The translations under genes were made by a program, and so were the position numbers. A DNA stretch of 64,000 bases from Anaeramoeba ignava BMAN (Eukaryota > Protista > Anaeramoebae): positions 496,001-560,000 of the forward strand of contig JAPDFW010000059.1 of NCBI GenBank assembly GCA_028826165.1. The letters are read 5' to 3'. The notes beneath the pieces were generated by a model, which saw nothing but the letters and a program-made list of their open reading frames with translations, ran no database searches and was not told the DNA's origin. Shown here piece by piece: positions 14,431 through 45,825 of the stretch (its first letter is position 1; each line of letters begins with the position of its first letter).

Positions 14431-14510
14431 TTAATAAAGAAATTGCTTTCTGATTTATATCTTCATTTAGATTTAAATATAAACCATCATTTACAATTAT
14501 TCTTTATTAA
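14431..14510 (-). promoter_or_regulatory. Eukaryotic SECIS element in the 3' UTR of the selenoprotein gene
   Basis: Minus strand reads TTAATAAAGA-ATAATTG-TAA-ATGA-TGGTTTATATTT-AAA-TCTAAATGA-AGATATAAATCA-GA-AAG-CAATT-TCTTTATTAA. This gives helix I, the AUGA/GA core, a 12-bp helix II and an apical AAA. Confidence 0.92.
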
Positions 14511-14547
14511 ATTTTTTTTTTATTTGAAAAATTATTTGAAAAATTAT

Positions 14548-15147
14548 TTATTTAAGAAATTCACGAAGAATTTCAAAAATATCTTCTTTATGAGGATATC
14601 TACCACTTTTGTATTTAGAAAATAAAACTTCACCATCACTTGTAAGAAGATCAACAGTTGGACATCTTGTACTATAAACCAAAAAAGAAAAAAAATTATA
14701 AAAAAAAATTGTAAATAAAAATTGTAAATAAAAATTGTAAATAAAAATTGTAAATAAAAATTATTTACTTGTCATCAATCTTTTTTACATCAACTTCAAA
14801 ACCTTCTTTCTCTAAAGTTTCTCTGAGTGTTCTTGCAGTACGACTATCGGATCATCCTTTTTTTTTTAAATTAATTTTTTTAAGTTAATTTTTTTAATTA
14901 AATTTTTAATTAGATTTTTAAATTAGATTTTTAAATTAAATTTTTAATTAGATTTTTTAATTAGATTTTTAAGTTAAATCTTTATTAACCTCCACAAAAT
15001 TCAATTAAAAGTGATAATCCTTCAGGAATAATAAATTTTTGTTTCTGTTTCTGTTTCTGGATTTGATTCACCTATTTGAGTTGAATCATTTTGAAGTGTT
15101 GGAATTGAAAGAAATAAAATGAATAATAAGAGAAAAAATCTTATCAT
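14548..15147 (-). CDS. Rdx-family (SelW/SelT/SelH-like) selenoprotein with CxxU motif and signal peptide (exons 15147-14990, 14856-14769, 14671-14548)
   Basis: Spliced: MIRFFLLLFILFLSIPTLQ...LLIEFCGG-U(TGA 14854-14852)-SDSRTARTLRETL...GEVLFSKYKSGRYP...EFLK*. A SECIS follows the stop. Exon 1 needs one base removed from the homopolymer at 15036-15040. Confidence 0.88.
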
Positions 15148-33650: not shown

Positions 33651-35464
33651 ATGGATCCAATCACAGAAGCAATTTGGAATGGAGACTTAAAAGAAATACA
33701 AAAATTAATAAAAGCAGGAGAAGATATTAATAAACAATCTGAATTCAGTGGACAAACACCAATTCATTTAGCATTACAAGAGAACAAAAGAGAAATAGCG
33801 ATATATTTAGTAGAAAACGGAGCAAATTTAAATATAATTGACAATAATGGATTAACACCATTGATGATAGCGGTTGACATTCCATCTCGCGATATGGTTG
33901 AGCTTCTGCTACTTCACGGCGCAAATGTTGATGCTATTAATGAATATGGTGAAACTTGTCTTCATAAAGTTATCGATCAAAATAGCAAAATTGCACATCT
34001 TTTGATGTCTTATGGTGCAAATCCCTTTTTCAAGGATAATGATAATGCCATTCCTCGTGATTATGTTACAAATAAAGGTGTTCTCTCATTCTTGGAAAGA
34101 TATTCTAATAAATTTAGAGATTATTCTCCTGCTCTCTTTTTTGATTTCGTTAATGAATATAAAAATATTGCTATGGAAATTGGAAATGAATTTATAATTG
34201 ATATTAATAAACTTAAAGAAATTGATTTTATTAAAAGAGGTGCTTTTGGTGATGTTTGGAAAGGTATTTATGATGGAAAACCTGTTGCTATTAAAAAATT
34301 CTTGAAAGAATTACGTGGTTCAGATTTAGAAATGTTTTATCGCGAAGTTGCTCTTTTAGTGTAAAAATTAAAATTAAAATTAAAATTAAAATTTAATAAA
34401 ATTAAAATTAAAATTAAAATTTAATATTAAAATTAAAATTAAAATTAAAATTAAAATTAAAATTAAAATTAAATTAAAATTAAAATTTAAATCAAAATTC
34501 AAATCCAAATTAAAATTAAAATTTAAATTAAAATTAAAATCAAATTTAAATTAAAATTAAATCAAATTAAATTAAATCAAAATTAAATTATAATTAAAAT
34601 TAAAATTAAAATTAAAATTAAAATTAAAATCAAAATTAAATTAAATCAAATTAAATTAAATTAAAATTAATATCAAAATTAAAATTATAATTAATATTAA
34701 AATTAAATTTAAATCAAAATCAAAATTATAATTAAATTTAATTAAATTAAATCAAATTAAAATTAAATTTGAAATAAAGGAAATGTAAACATCCAAATAT
34801 TGTTGAAACTATTGGATTTCATCTTCTTGACAAAGCAGATCCAATCAAAAGTACATATCCAACATGTATAGTTCTTGAATATGTTCCAAGAGGAAGTTTA
34901 TCAGAAAGATTAAAGAAACTTTTAGAAAAGAATCTAAGAATAAAAAAAGACACAATAATATCTTATGCGATTGACATAGCAGAAGGAATGAAATACTTAC
35001 ACGATAAGGGAGTAATTCATCGAGATTTAAAATCAGGGAATATTTTAATAACAAATGAAAATCATTTGAAAATCATTGATTTTGGATTAGCTCGATATAA
35101 AGCAGGAGAAACTGATATTACAGGAGAAATGACAATTAACATTGGAACACCTAATTGGATGGCACCCGAAATTTTAAGAGGTGAATCTGATTATACTCCA
35201 AAAGTTGATGTTTATAGTTATGGTCTTGTTTTATGGGAAATGGTTTATCGTGAAATTCCTTATAAAAAACTTCTTTTGCAAGTCGGAATGGAAGAATTTA
35301 AATCTAAAGTTGGTTTTGATAAACCTACTTTGAAACTCCCAAAAAAATATCTTCCTGAAGAAATGAATAATTTAATGGCAAGATGTTGGGATCATGACCC
35401 TGATAAACGTCCTGAATTTTCTGAAATTTGTGAAATTTTAAAAGAAATTAAAAACAAAAAATAA
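33651..35464 (+). CDS. Ankyrin-repeat TKL protein kinase, copy 1 (intron 34361-34779)
   Basis: ANK repeats followed by GAFG, VAIK, HRDLKSGN, DFG and APE motifs. Confidence 0.93.
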
Positions 35465-35689: not shown

Positions 35690-37779
35690 ATGTATTCAAT
35701 CGAAAAAGCAATTTGGAATGGAGATTTAAAAGAAATTAAAAAATTAATAACAACAGGAGAAAACATTAATAAACAATCCGAATTGACTGGGCAAACACCA
35801 ATTTATATTGCACTAAAAAAGGAAAAGCATAAAATAGTAAGATATTTAGTAGAAAACGGAGCAAATTTAAATATAATTGATAATAATGGATTAACACCAT
35901 TGATGATAGCGGTTGACAGTCAATCATATGATATGGTTGAGTTTTTATTAAGTCATGGCGCAAATGTTGATGCTTTTAATGAATATGGTGAAACTTGTCT
36001 TCATAAAGTTATCGATCAAAATAGCAAAATTGCACATCTTTTGATGTCTTATGGTGCAAATCCCTTTTTCAAGGATAATGATAATAAACTTCCTCTTGAT
36101 TATGCTACAAATAAAGGTGTTCTCTCATTCTTGGAAAGATATTCTAATAAATTTAGAGATTATTCTCCTGCTCTCTTTTTTGAATTTGTTAATGAATATA
36201 AAAATATTGCTATGGAAATTGGAAATGAATTTATGATTGATATTAATAAACTTAAAAACTTATTTTATTCAAAGAGGTGCTTTTGGTGATGTTTGGAAAG
36301 GTACTTATGATGGAAAACCTGTTGCTATTAAAAAATTCTCTAAAAAATTGCGTGGTTTAAATTTAGAAATGTTTTATCGAGAAGTTGCTCTTTTAATGTT
36401 AATTCATTTATAAAATTATAAATCAAATCAAATCAAATCAAATCAAATCAAATCAAATCAAATTAAATCAAAATTAAATTAAATCAAAATTAAATCAAAT
36501 TAAATTAAATCAAATTAAATTCAAATAAAATTAAATTAAATCAAATCAAATTAAATTAAAATCAAATTAAATTAAATTAAATCAAATCAAATCAAATCAA
36601 ATTCAAATTAAATTAAATTAAAATCAAATCAAATCAAATTAAATCAAATTAAATCAAAATCAAATCAAATCAAATCAAATTCAAATTAAATTAAATTAAA
36701 TCAAATCAAATCAAATTAAAATTAAATCAAAATCAAAATTAAATTAAATCAAATCAAAATTAAATTAAATCAAATTAAAATTAAATCAAATCAAAATTAA
36801 AATCAAATTAAATCAAATCAAATCAAATCAAATTAAATTTAATTAAATTAAAATTAAATTAAATTAAATTAAATCAAAATCAAATTAAATCAATTTAAAT
36901 TTAATTAAAATCAAATCAAAATTAAATTAAATTAAATTTAAATCAAATCAAAATAAATTTAAATCAAATCAAATCAAATCGAAATCAAATTAAATTAAAT
37001 TAAATCAAATTAAATTAAAATTAAATTTAAATCAAATCAAATCAAAATTAAATCAAAATTAAATTAAATTAAATTAAAATTAAATTAAAAGGAAATGTAA
37101 ACATCCAAATATTGTTGAAACTATTGGATTTCATCTTCTTGAAAAAGAAGATCCAATCAAAAATATTTATCCAACATGTATAGTTCTTGAATATGTTCCA
37201 AGAGGAAGTTTATCAGAAAGATTAAATAAACTTTTAGAAAAGAATCTAAGATTAAAAAAAGAAACAATAATATCCTATGCGATTGACATAGCAGAAGGAA
37301 TGAAATACTTACACAATATGGGAATAATTCATCGAGATTTAAAATCAGGGAATATTTTAATAACAAATGAAAATCATTTGAAAATCATTGATTTTGGAAT
37401 ATCAAGATTTAAAGAAGGAGTAACTGATATTACAACAGAAATGTCAATTTATGTTGGAACACCTAATTGGATGGCACCCGAAATTTTAAGAGGTGAATCT
37501 GATTATACTCAAAAAGTTGATGTTTATGATTATGGTCTTGTTTTATGGGAAATGGTTTATCGTGAAATTCCTTATAAAAAACTTCTTAATGATGTTGGTT
37601 TTGAAAAATTTAAATCTAAAGTTGGTTGTAATAAAACTTCTTTGGAAATTCCTAAAAATTCATATCTTCCTGATGAATTTAATAATTTAATGGCAAGATG
37701 TTGGGATTATAATCCTAATAATCGTCCTGAATTTTCTGAAATTTGTGAAACTTTAAAAGAAATTAAAAACAAAAAATAA
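35690..37779 (+). CDS. Ankyrin-repeat TKL kinase, copy 2 (intron 36398-37091; frameshift near 36255-36270)
   Basis: Same motifs. About 2 nt are missing relative to the paralogues before GAFG (error or pseudogene). Confidence 0.8.
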
Positions 37780-38334: not shown

Positions 38335-40833
38335 ATGGATCCAATTACAGAAGCAATTTGGAATGATGATTTAAAAGAAATCCAAAAATTAATATCATCA
38401 GGAGAAGATATTAATAAACGGTCTGAATTCAGTGGGCAAACACCAATTTATTTAGCATTACAAAAGAACAAAAAAGAAATAGTAAGATATTTAGTAGAAA
38501 ACGGAGCAAATTTAAATATAATTGATAATAATGGATTAACACCATTGATGATAGCGGTTGACAGCGAATCTCATGATATGGTTGAGTTTTTATTAAGTTA
38601 CGGCGCAAATGTTGATGCTGTTAATGAATATGGTGAAACTTGTCTTCATAAAGTTATCGATCAAAATAGCAAAATTTCATATATTTTGTTGTCTTATGGT
38701 GCAAATCCCTTTCTCAAAGATATTGATAATAAACTTCCTCTTGATTATGCTACAAATGGACGTACCGTCTCATTCTTGGAAAGATATTCTAATAAATTTA
38801 GAGATTATTCTCCTGCTCTCTTTTTTGATTTCGTTAATGAATATAAAAATATTGCTATGGAACTTGGAAATAAATTTATGATTGATGTTAATAAACTTAA
38901 AGAAATTAGTCCAATTATAAAAGGTGCTTTTGGTGATATTTGGAAAGGTACTTATAATGGTAATGTTGTTGCTATTAAAAAATTCTTGAAAGAAATGCGT
39001 GGTTTAAATTTAGAAATATTTTATCGAGAAGTTGCTCTTTTAATGTAAATTCATTTATAAAATTATAAATTAAATCAAAATCAAATCAAAAATTAAATTA
39101 AATCAAATTAAAATCAAATTAAATTAAATCAAATTAAATCAAATTAAATTAAATTAAATCAAATTAAATTAAATTAAATCAAATTAAATTTAATCAAAAT
39201 CAAATTAAATCAAATCAAATTAAATTAAATTAAATCAAATTAAATCAAATCAAAATCAAATTAAATCAAATCAAATCAAATCAAATCAAATCAAATCAAA
39301 TCAAATCTAATTAAATTAAATTAAATTAAATTAAATCATAATCAAATAAAATTAAATCAAATTAAATTAAATTAAATTAAATCAAATTAAAATTAAATTA
39401 AATCAAATCAAAATTAAAATTAAAATTAAAATTAAAAATTAAAATTAAAAATTAAAATTAAATTAAATCATCAAATTAAATTAAATTAAATTAAATTAAA
39501 TTAAATTAAATTAAATTAAATCAAATCAAATCAAATTCAAATTAAATTAAATCAAATTAAATAAAATAAAATTAAATTTAAATCAAATTAAATTAAATTA
39601 AAGTAAATCAAAATTAAATTAAATTAAATTAAATCAAATTAAAATCAAAATTAAAATTAAATTAAAATTAAATTAAATCAAAAATCAAAATCAAATCAAA
39701 ATTAAATTAAATTTAATCAAATCAAATTAAATTAAATCATTAAATTAAATTAAATTAAATTAAAATTAAAATTAAATTAAAATTAAATTAAATCAAAATC
39801 AAAATCAAATCAAAATCAAATCAAATTAAATTAAAATCAAATTAAATTAAATTAAATTAAATTAAATTAAATTAAATTAAATTAAATTAAAATCAAATCA
39901 AATCAAATCAAATTAAAATTAAAATTAAAATTAAAATTAAAATTAAATTAAATCAAAATCAAATCAAAATCAAAATCAAAATCAAAATTAAATCAAAATC
40001 AAATTAAATCAAAATTAAATTAAATCAAATCATATCAAAATTAAATTAAATTAAATTAAATTAAATTAAATCATAATTAAATTAAATTTAATCATTAAAT
40101 TAAATTAAATTAAATTAAATTAAATCAAATTAAATCAAATTAAAGTAAATGTAAACATCCAAATATTGTTGAAACTATTGGATTTCATCTCTTTAAAAAA
40201 GAAGATCCAATCAAAAATATTTATCCAACATGTATAGTTCTTGAATATTTTAAAACTGGAAGTTTATCAGAAAGAATAAAGAAACTTTTAAAAAAGAATC
40301 TAAGATTAAAAAAAGAAACAATAATATCTTATGCGATTGACATAGCAGAAGGAATGAAATATTTACACAATATGGGAGTAATTCATCGAGATTTAAAATC
40401 AGGGAATATTTTAATAACAAATGAAAATCATTTGAAAATCATTGATTTTGGATTATCTAGATTTAAACCAGGAGTAACTAACATTACAACAGAAATGTCA
40501 ATTGGAGTTGGAACATTTAATTGGATGGCACCCGAAATTTTAAGAGGTGAATCTGATTATACTCCAAAAGTTGATGTTTATAGTTATGGTCTTGTTTTAT
40601 GGCAAATGGTTTTTCGTGAAATTCCTTATAAAAAACTTCTTTTGCATAAAGGAAGAGAAGAATTTAGATCTAAAGTTGGTTTTGGTAAAACTTCTTTGAG
40701 AATTCCTAAAAGGAGTTATCTTCCTGATGAATTTATTAATTTAATGGCAAGATGTTGGGATTATAATCCTAATAATCGTCCTGAATTTTCTGAAATTTGT
40801 GAAATTTTAAAAGAAATTAAAAACAAAAAATAA
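38335..40833 (+). CDS. Ankyrin-repeat TKL kinase, copy 3 (intron 39045-40145)
   Basis: Same architecture; intact. Confidence 0.93.
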
Positions 40834-45732: not shown

Positions 45733-45825
45733 TAAGAGGTTAATGATTAAGAAAAAAGATGTCATGCACCACACAGATAATTTTTATATTATGAAGATTC
45801 ATCTAAACCATTATGAAACCTCTTA
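45733..45825 (+). ncRNA. Box C/D snoRNA, snR40/SNORD32-like guide for SSU rRNA
   Basis: 9-bp terminal stem TAAGAGGTT/AACCTCTTA; box C ATGATTA 45743-45749; guide GTCATGCACCAC 45761-45772; D' CAGA; C' ATGAAGA; box D ATGA 45813-45816. Confidence 0.8.

Follow-up and report, generated by a model that had tools for sequence, protein, structure and literature searches.

Does the minus strand at positions 14431-15147 of a 64,000-nucleotide stretch of DNA from Anaeramoeba ignava BMAN (hereafter the window) encode a selenoprotein whose active site is absent from the current gene catalogue? Anaeramoeba ignava is a deep-branching anaerobic relative of metamonads. In the literature that we searched, we found no description of host selenoproteins of Anaeramoeba. 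The A. ignava genome paper mentions selenocysteine (Sec) for bacterial symbionts only (PMC11550330), a 2026 preprint mentions just two tRNA-Sec genes, in A. pumila, and a tRNA-Sec found in Spironucleus provided a hint of Sec use in metamonads (PMC1805757). The best explanation of the locus, to which we assign a probability of about 0.8, is that it is a nuclear selenoprotein gene of the Rdx family (SelW/SelT/SelH), with a spliced CGGU motif and a form-2 SECIS, that has been misannotated publicly. The features on which this reading draws are the following:

14990-15147, minus strand: exon 1, from three-frame translation, with the ATG at 15147-15145 as in the public model KAJ5076849.1
15022-15074, minus strand: interval of exon 1 in which the frame changes, from three-frame translation
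14996-14994, minus strand: Cys codon (TGT) of the CGGU motif, read from the sequence
14989-14857, minus strand: intron 1, GTTAAT...AAG, 133 nt, phase 1, with GT-AG ends; paralogues L010 and L011 are interrupted at the identical site
14856-14769, minus strand: exon 2, opening GA TGA TCC, GC 35 %, colinear with the paralogues
14854-14852, minus strand: TGA (predicted Sec) at the U of CxxU, its position matching the TGA of L009, L010 and L011
14768-14672, minus strand: intron 2, GTAAAT...TAG, 97 nt, phase 2, with GT-AG ends, also in the public model
14671-14548, minus strand: exon 3, C-terminal half of the Rdx domain (DGEVLFSKYKSGRYP), from Pfam, BLASTP and hhalign
14550-14548, minus strand: TAA stop at the end of exon 3
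14431-14510, core 14441-14498, minus strand: form-2 SECIS in the 3' UTR, from Rfam SECIS_1, folding and a species-specific model

The initial annotation had proposed three minus-strand exons with two GT-AG introns, and a TGA exactly at the U of a CxxU motif that only splicing assembles. Both proposals are borne out, the former by the coordinates and the GC contrast, the latter by the second Gly codon of the motif, which is split across intron 1 (g at 14990, ga at 14856-14855), so that F-C-G-G-TGA is present only once the intron has been spliced out. The final 82 nt of exon 1, in the frame one step from that of the ATG (frame A+1, whose translation ending at 14990 is ...FIIPEGLSLLIEFCGG), encode ...FIIPEGLSLLIEFCG and base 1 of this Gly; exon 2 continues with the remaining ga, the TGA, SDSRTARTLRETLEKEGFEVDVKKIDD and the aa of an Asn codon, and the exon 2/3 junction reads ...KKIDD-N-TRC.... 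We read the locus in this way because its GC contrast, with exons at 23-35 % against 6.8 % in intron 1 and 9.3 % in intron 2, matches that of the neighbouring gene (M0811_00168, a hypothetical protein with exons at 23-28 % and introns at 6.1-9.0 %, whose public protein is reproduced exactly from the DNA) as well as the published intron mean of 8.14 % for this species (n=32,108; median length 102 nt, mode 76, shortest 35; PMC11550330, Table S3A). Exon 1, at 23-29 % GC, is comparable to the exons of that neighbour. Within the genome itself, the best argument for the proposed splicing of intron 1 is that L010 and L011 share its position. The locus is very probably a real A. ignava gene for a small Sec-containing redox protein, as far as its sequence can tell.

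The family assignment made in the initial annotation is supported by several searches. When the exons were compared with Pfam one by one, exon 3 matched Rdx (PF10262) over positions 48-74 of 74 with 15.4 bits (E 0.021), below the gathering score of 22.6 bits, and the partial protein KAJ5076849.1 reached 14.6 bits against the same threshold, which L009, L010 and L011 exceed. BLASTP related exon 3 to L010 (E 2e-7) and L011 (E 1e-7), and hhalign aligned the exon 2-3 part of KAJ5076849.1 with a profile of four paralogues at a probability of 94 % (E 1.4e-7); exon 2 alone aligned with this profile weakly and in the correct place. The single match of a PDB search was an Rdx protein, MIEN1/C17orf37 (2ljk, E 0.28). 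Among ESM Atlas look-alikes of KAJ5076849.1, which we treat as a lead only, Rdx clusters came first, and the low-confidence model of this protein has a TM of 0.76 to one of them. The CxxU lies directly behind the first beta-strand (...LSLLIEF-C-G-G-TGA), in the register of MQVSITFCGG-TGA in L011 and MNVHIEFCLV-TGA in L009, and the in-frame UGA aligns with the Sec of the homologues L009, L010 and L011. A C-terminal motif of the form G-x-L-[IVF]-[FYW]-S-[KR]...G-x-[FY]-P is present, with DGEVLFSKYKSGRYP aligning with both the paralogues and MIEN1. A phmmer search of exon 3 against 1.84 billion representatives returned no orthologue in other species, only KAJ5076849.1 and unrelated repeat proteins; no further relatives came from word-based searches, for which KAJ5076849.1 and the L010 exon served as queries, and a contig search returned no other contig encoding the protein of the neighbouring gene.

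A Sep15/SelM reading of CGGU was rejected, there being no PF08806 match at E<=10 for any exon or at E<=1 for the public protein. SelT proteins have ~190 residues, a hydrophobic insertion inside the domain and a CVSU motif; the domain predicted here is a contiguous one of ~85 residues, and nothing is inserted between exons 2 and 3.

With PF10262 as query, the genome yielded four other Rdx loci (a slash marks an intron boundary):

Contig C71, 143338-143559 (L009, 1498-1731): single-exon gene, MNVHIEFCLV-TGA-NYDPEF..., 66 bits against Pfam Rdx
L009, 1830-1899: SECIS in the 3' UTR of that gene, 21 bits with the species model R2 described below
Contig C137 (L011, 954-1659): two-exon gene, MQVSITFCGG-intron-U-GIYGEF..., with a Lys/Glu-rich tail
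L011, 1780-1841: SECIS of the C137 gene, at 39.5 bits the best of the genome and above the Rfam gathering score
Contig C15 (L010, 1265-1690), minus strand: paralogue of the C137 gene, reading atag/GA TGA GGT
Contig C78 (L012, 1480-2185), minus strand: Rdx selenoprotein with first exon MSREIKYRVCIFLELG-TGA-TGC-AAG/gtaaaa

With the window gene, the genome would thus hold at least five Rdx selenoprotein genes. A phase-1 intron within the Gly codon before Sec is common to the window gene, L010 and L011. In L011 the junction reads ATG..ATC ACA TTT TGT GGT G/gtaaat...atag/GA TGA GGA, and in L010 the intron before the acceptor is made up of repeats of the AATAATAATTTT type and exceeds 1.3 kb, with the first exon lying beyond the retrieved locus. 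The window gene also resembles these two in its C-terminal ...SRKKTGR[YF]P and in a SECIS with a 12-nt AUGA-to-AAA spacing and an AAAUC...GA apex. However, its identity to them is only 33-38 % over ~30 residues, and, unlike the window gene, they have no hydrophobic leader, no second intron, and Lys/Glu-rich tails; the paralogue start, shown for L011, lies 7 residues before the Cys, which also differs from the window gene. L012 departs from the usual motif in that Glu replaces the partner Cys three residues before Sec and a Cys follows Sec directly; a SECIS-like hairpin (UGUAAAUGAU...) lies ~80 nt past its stop.

The claim that a canonical SECIS starts some 40 nt after the stop proved accurate in its details. 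The Rfam SECIS_1 model matches 14441-14498 over its full length with 21.1 bits (gathering score 35), and the parts can be placed individually: AUGA at 14490-14487, the apical AAA at 14474-14472 and GA at 14450-14449. Helix II has 12 bp, the AAA is unpaired, and there is a 2-bp mini-stem; helix I reaches 14510 and 14431, and the extended stem begins 38 nt past the stop. Folding of the 81-nt region gives -19.6 kcal/mol (z -5.1), a stability matched by none of 200 shuffled sequences. Across the 42.8 Mb of the genome, SECIS_1 has five matches at E<=10, which follow L011, the thioredoxin reductase gene, a small ORF on contig C73, L010 and the window gene, so that three of the five lie downstream of Rdx genes and one downstream of thioredoxin reductase. 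We also built a covariance model (R2) from four other SECIS elements of the genome, those of L010, L011, thioredoxin reductase and SPS2. Over 73 kb, both strands, the window element ranks first with R2 at 29.8 bits (E 0.008), the next window match scoring 18.9, and the spacing between AUGA and AAA is 12 nt in all five elements, that is, the four of the model and that of the window. On sequence grounds, the window SECIS is more than a chance match, since it is both one of the five genome SECIS_1 matches and the top match of the species model.

A model made from two sequences (R1) had been too weak, with repeat-derived partial matches outscoring true elements, and R2 was used instead. Three identical 37-nt stretches of the plus strand (35043-35079, 37355-37391 and 40409-40445), spaced ~2.3-3 kb apart, carry the same partial R1 match and look like a piece of a dispersed or tandem repeat rather than SECIS elements.

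Decoding of the TGA as Sec would also call on the machinery and company of a Sec-using genome, and here the expectation that the organism has eukaryotic Sec machinery is upheld for tRNA-Sec, eEFSec, SepSecS and a Sec-containing SPS2, while PSTK and SBP2 stand at candidate level. The tRNA-Sec scores 70.3 bits and is called by ARAGORN as tRNA-SeC(tca), with anticodon TCA. SepSecS is spread over two exons (493 and 85 bits). The eEFSec gene on contig C24 has domains III (92 bits) and IV (50 bits) beside its GTPase exons; these two domains are eukaryote-specific. The top TIGR00475 match was rejected as eEFSec, being EF-1alpha. A KTI12/PSTK-like ORF, at 74 bits to the PSTK model and far under its cut-off, is our candidate PSTK, and the candidate SBP2 contains an L7Ae module that matches eL8 and SBP2 equally. 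The other relevant loci of the genome are:

Contig C64, 1028999-1030481 (L015/L016): SPS2 in three exons, with an in-frame TGA (...MKG-U-SCKLPQ) that we take to be the known Sec site, and its own SECIS at L016 2837-2899
Contig C73, 330596-330814 (L036, 1288-3027): candidate SBP2, a 579-codon ORF in which a very long Asn/Gln/Ile/Glu repeat comes after the L7Ae module
Contig C2, 449778-449840 (L024, 47-812 and 1501-1563): thioredoxin reductase ending ...KKTGC-TGA-G-stop, the canonical GCUG, with a SECIS of 32.2 bits ~700 nt downstream
Contig C73, 332204-332265 (L025, 1501-1838), minus strand: SECIS_1 match of 29 bits, ~100 nt past a 59-codon ORF

The 59-codon ORF, which is rich in Cys, Ser and Arg, has the ending ...SECSEG-TGA-N-stop and may code for a small selenoprotein whose Sec lies close to the C-terminus. 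Elsewhere in the window, the plus strand at 45738-45820 shows a C/D-box snoRNA-like match (Rfam snoZ221_snoR21b, 31.3 bits, under gathering).

In the assembled sequence the reading frame of exon 1 is broken, as the initial annotation had warned. The ATG frame (frame A) runs from 15147 for 41 codons (MIRFFLLLFILFLS...) and terminates at TGA 15024-15022, before FCGG; the FCGG frame opens only past TAG 15074-15072, and three-frame translation finds no ATG in that frame of exon 1. An upstream exon, with the tag/g at 15072 as acceptor, was rejected because the ~100 nt upstream that separate the ATG from the divergent gene next to it offer no GT donor. We favour a 1-nt indel, which would be an error of the Nanopore-based assembly, over a 52-nt intron, and the latter over a real frameshift; the longest homopolymer within 15074-15022 is an A5 at 15040-15036, and the assembly is based on Nanopore R9 reads, with polishing by Racon, Nanopolish and two Pilon rounds (PMC11550330). 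If the assembly were instead correct, the same selenoprotein could be encoded with a real intron interrupting exon 1 at 15071-15020 (52 nt, GTGAAT...GAAG, phase 1), the single GT..AG pair that bridges the ATG and FCGG frames and the only reading that joins them without any correction. The precursor would then read ...NDSTQI-G-LSLLIEFCGGU... and be ~18 residues shorter. The published range allows an intron of this length (shortest 35 nt, mode 76 nt), but its GC content of 28.8 % compares with 6-9 % in all five introns examined and a published mean of 8.14 % (13 of its 48 inner nucleotides are G or C, binomial P 9e-5 at that mean), and it contains a codon-like (GAAACA)3 repeat; we consider such an intron unlikely. 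The public model shares its donor, which was however the sole GT open to the gene predictor, and its public use is therefore uninformative. We give still less credence to a pseudogene, that is, a recently inactivated paralogue with a true frameshift, no usable start codon and no product. The frame break does persist in the assembly after two Illumina polishing rounds, and at least four other Rdx selenoprotein genes in the genome could cover the function, yet the splice sites of both introns, the TGA, the frames of exons 2 and 3, the stop and a well-formed SECIS are all intact, and the exons retain their GC contrast where non-coding DNA drifts to ~8 % GC.

The initial annotation had also stated that the gene has no ORF call, which does not match the public record, where the locus appears as KAJ5076849.1 (M0811_00167), a hypothetical protein of 83 aa that is reproduced exactly by joining 15147-15072, 14820-14769 and 14671-14548. 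This model leaves the ATG frame at its sole GT and resumes midway through exon 2, and in doing so omits strand 1, the CGG-TGA and the beginning of helix 1. We judge it to be an artefact of the gene predictor, since predictors usually dodge in-frame stops by such splicing. Were the annotation right, the 15072-to-14820 splice would give a secreted protein of 83 aa that has no redox centre, and the SECIS-like hairpin would be fortuitous. Its coordinates do give KAJ5076849.1 exactly; nevertheless, its first intron, 251 nt at 19.5 % GC, has an acceptor without an A/T tract, the splice deletes strand 1 and the active site from a domain whose rest is conserved, and both the SECIS and the intron position shared by the paralogues are left unexplained. 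We find this account barely credible, and we return to the selenoprotein gene with a probable single-nucleotide assembly error.

For that gene, a precursor of ~105-125 residues is predicted. Splicing of intron 1 would join ...IEFCG-G to the UGA and thereby create the CGGU redox motif, with the UGA placed ~265 nt upstream of the SECIS in the predicted mature mRNA. If decoding follows the established eukaryotic route, eEFSec and Sec-tRNA would be recruited by SBP2 once it has bound the SECIS, and the UGA would be decoded as selenocysteine. Judging from the Rdx family, the Cys-x-x-Sec pair would then serve as a redox centre, alternating between a selenenylsulfide and its reduced state in the manner of thioredoxin-like oxidoreductases. 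Less firmly, the hydrophobic N-terminus could act as a signal peptide and direct the protein to the ER, the endomembrane system or the extracellular space. The leader has an Arg at position 3 and ~11 hydrophobic residues followed by a polar stretch, and the predicted protein has no KDEL-type or other ER-retention ending. The signal peptide and the ER or secreted location are inferences only: the hydrophobic N-terminus meets the Rdx frame only with the 1-nt correction or the 52-nt intron in exon 1, and T-rich DNA in this genome readily encodes runs of Phe, Leu and Ile.

Compared with known systems, the gene product is most readily set beside SelW (SELENOW, PF10262), with which it shares small size, a CxxU right after the first strand, a single UGA, a 3'-UTR SECIS and the C-terminal ...G-x-L-x-S-K...G-x-[FY]-P. 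In contrast to SelW, where CGAU is followed by Gly-Tyr, CGGU is followed here by Ser; the middle strand GxFEV is replaced by PTVDLL, and a hydrophobic N-terminal extension is present, whereas SelW is cytosolic. MIEN1 (2ljk) aligns over ...G-x-L-V-F-S-K...G-x-[FY]-P, but at E 0.28, and is a prenylated cytosolic protein with CxxC in place of CxxU. SELENOT is likewise a selenoprotein of the Rdx family; it has a signal sequence at its N-terminus and resides in the ER, as the protein predicted here may, and the insertion in its domain sets it apart. SelM and Sep15 (PF08806) offer parallels in their signal peptide, in the CGGU of SelM and in an ER redox role, although their thioredoxin-like fold is a different one.

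Anaeramoeba ignava houses sulfate-reducing symbionts. It is tempting to speculate that the Rdx family expanded to at least five genes and that the window member became secretory, serving redox or sulfide/selenium chemistry at the symbiont interface, either secreted or in the symbiosome lumen; we regard this scenario as very improbable.

The finding is that of a real but ordinary misannotated selenoprotein, which stands out for its hydrophobic leader and for an intron, common across the family, that splits CxxU. It corrects a public gene model, KAJ5076849.1, that is without the active site, and it is an example of selenoproteins being masked by gene prediction. For tracing duplications in the family, the shared intron within CxxU offers a handy marker. 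Together with the paralogues, thioredoxin reductase and SPS2, the gene described here indicates that A. ignava possesses several selenoproteins and a Sec system that looks functional.
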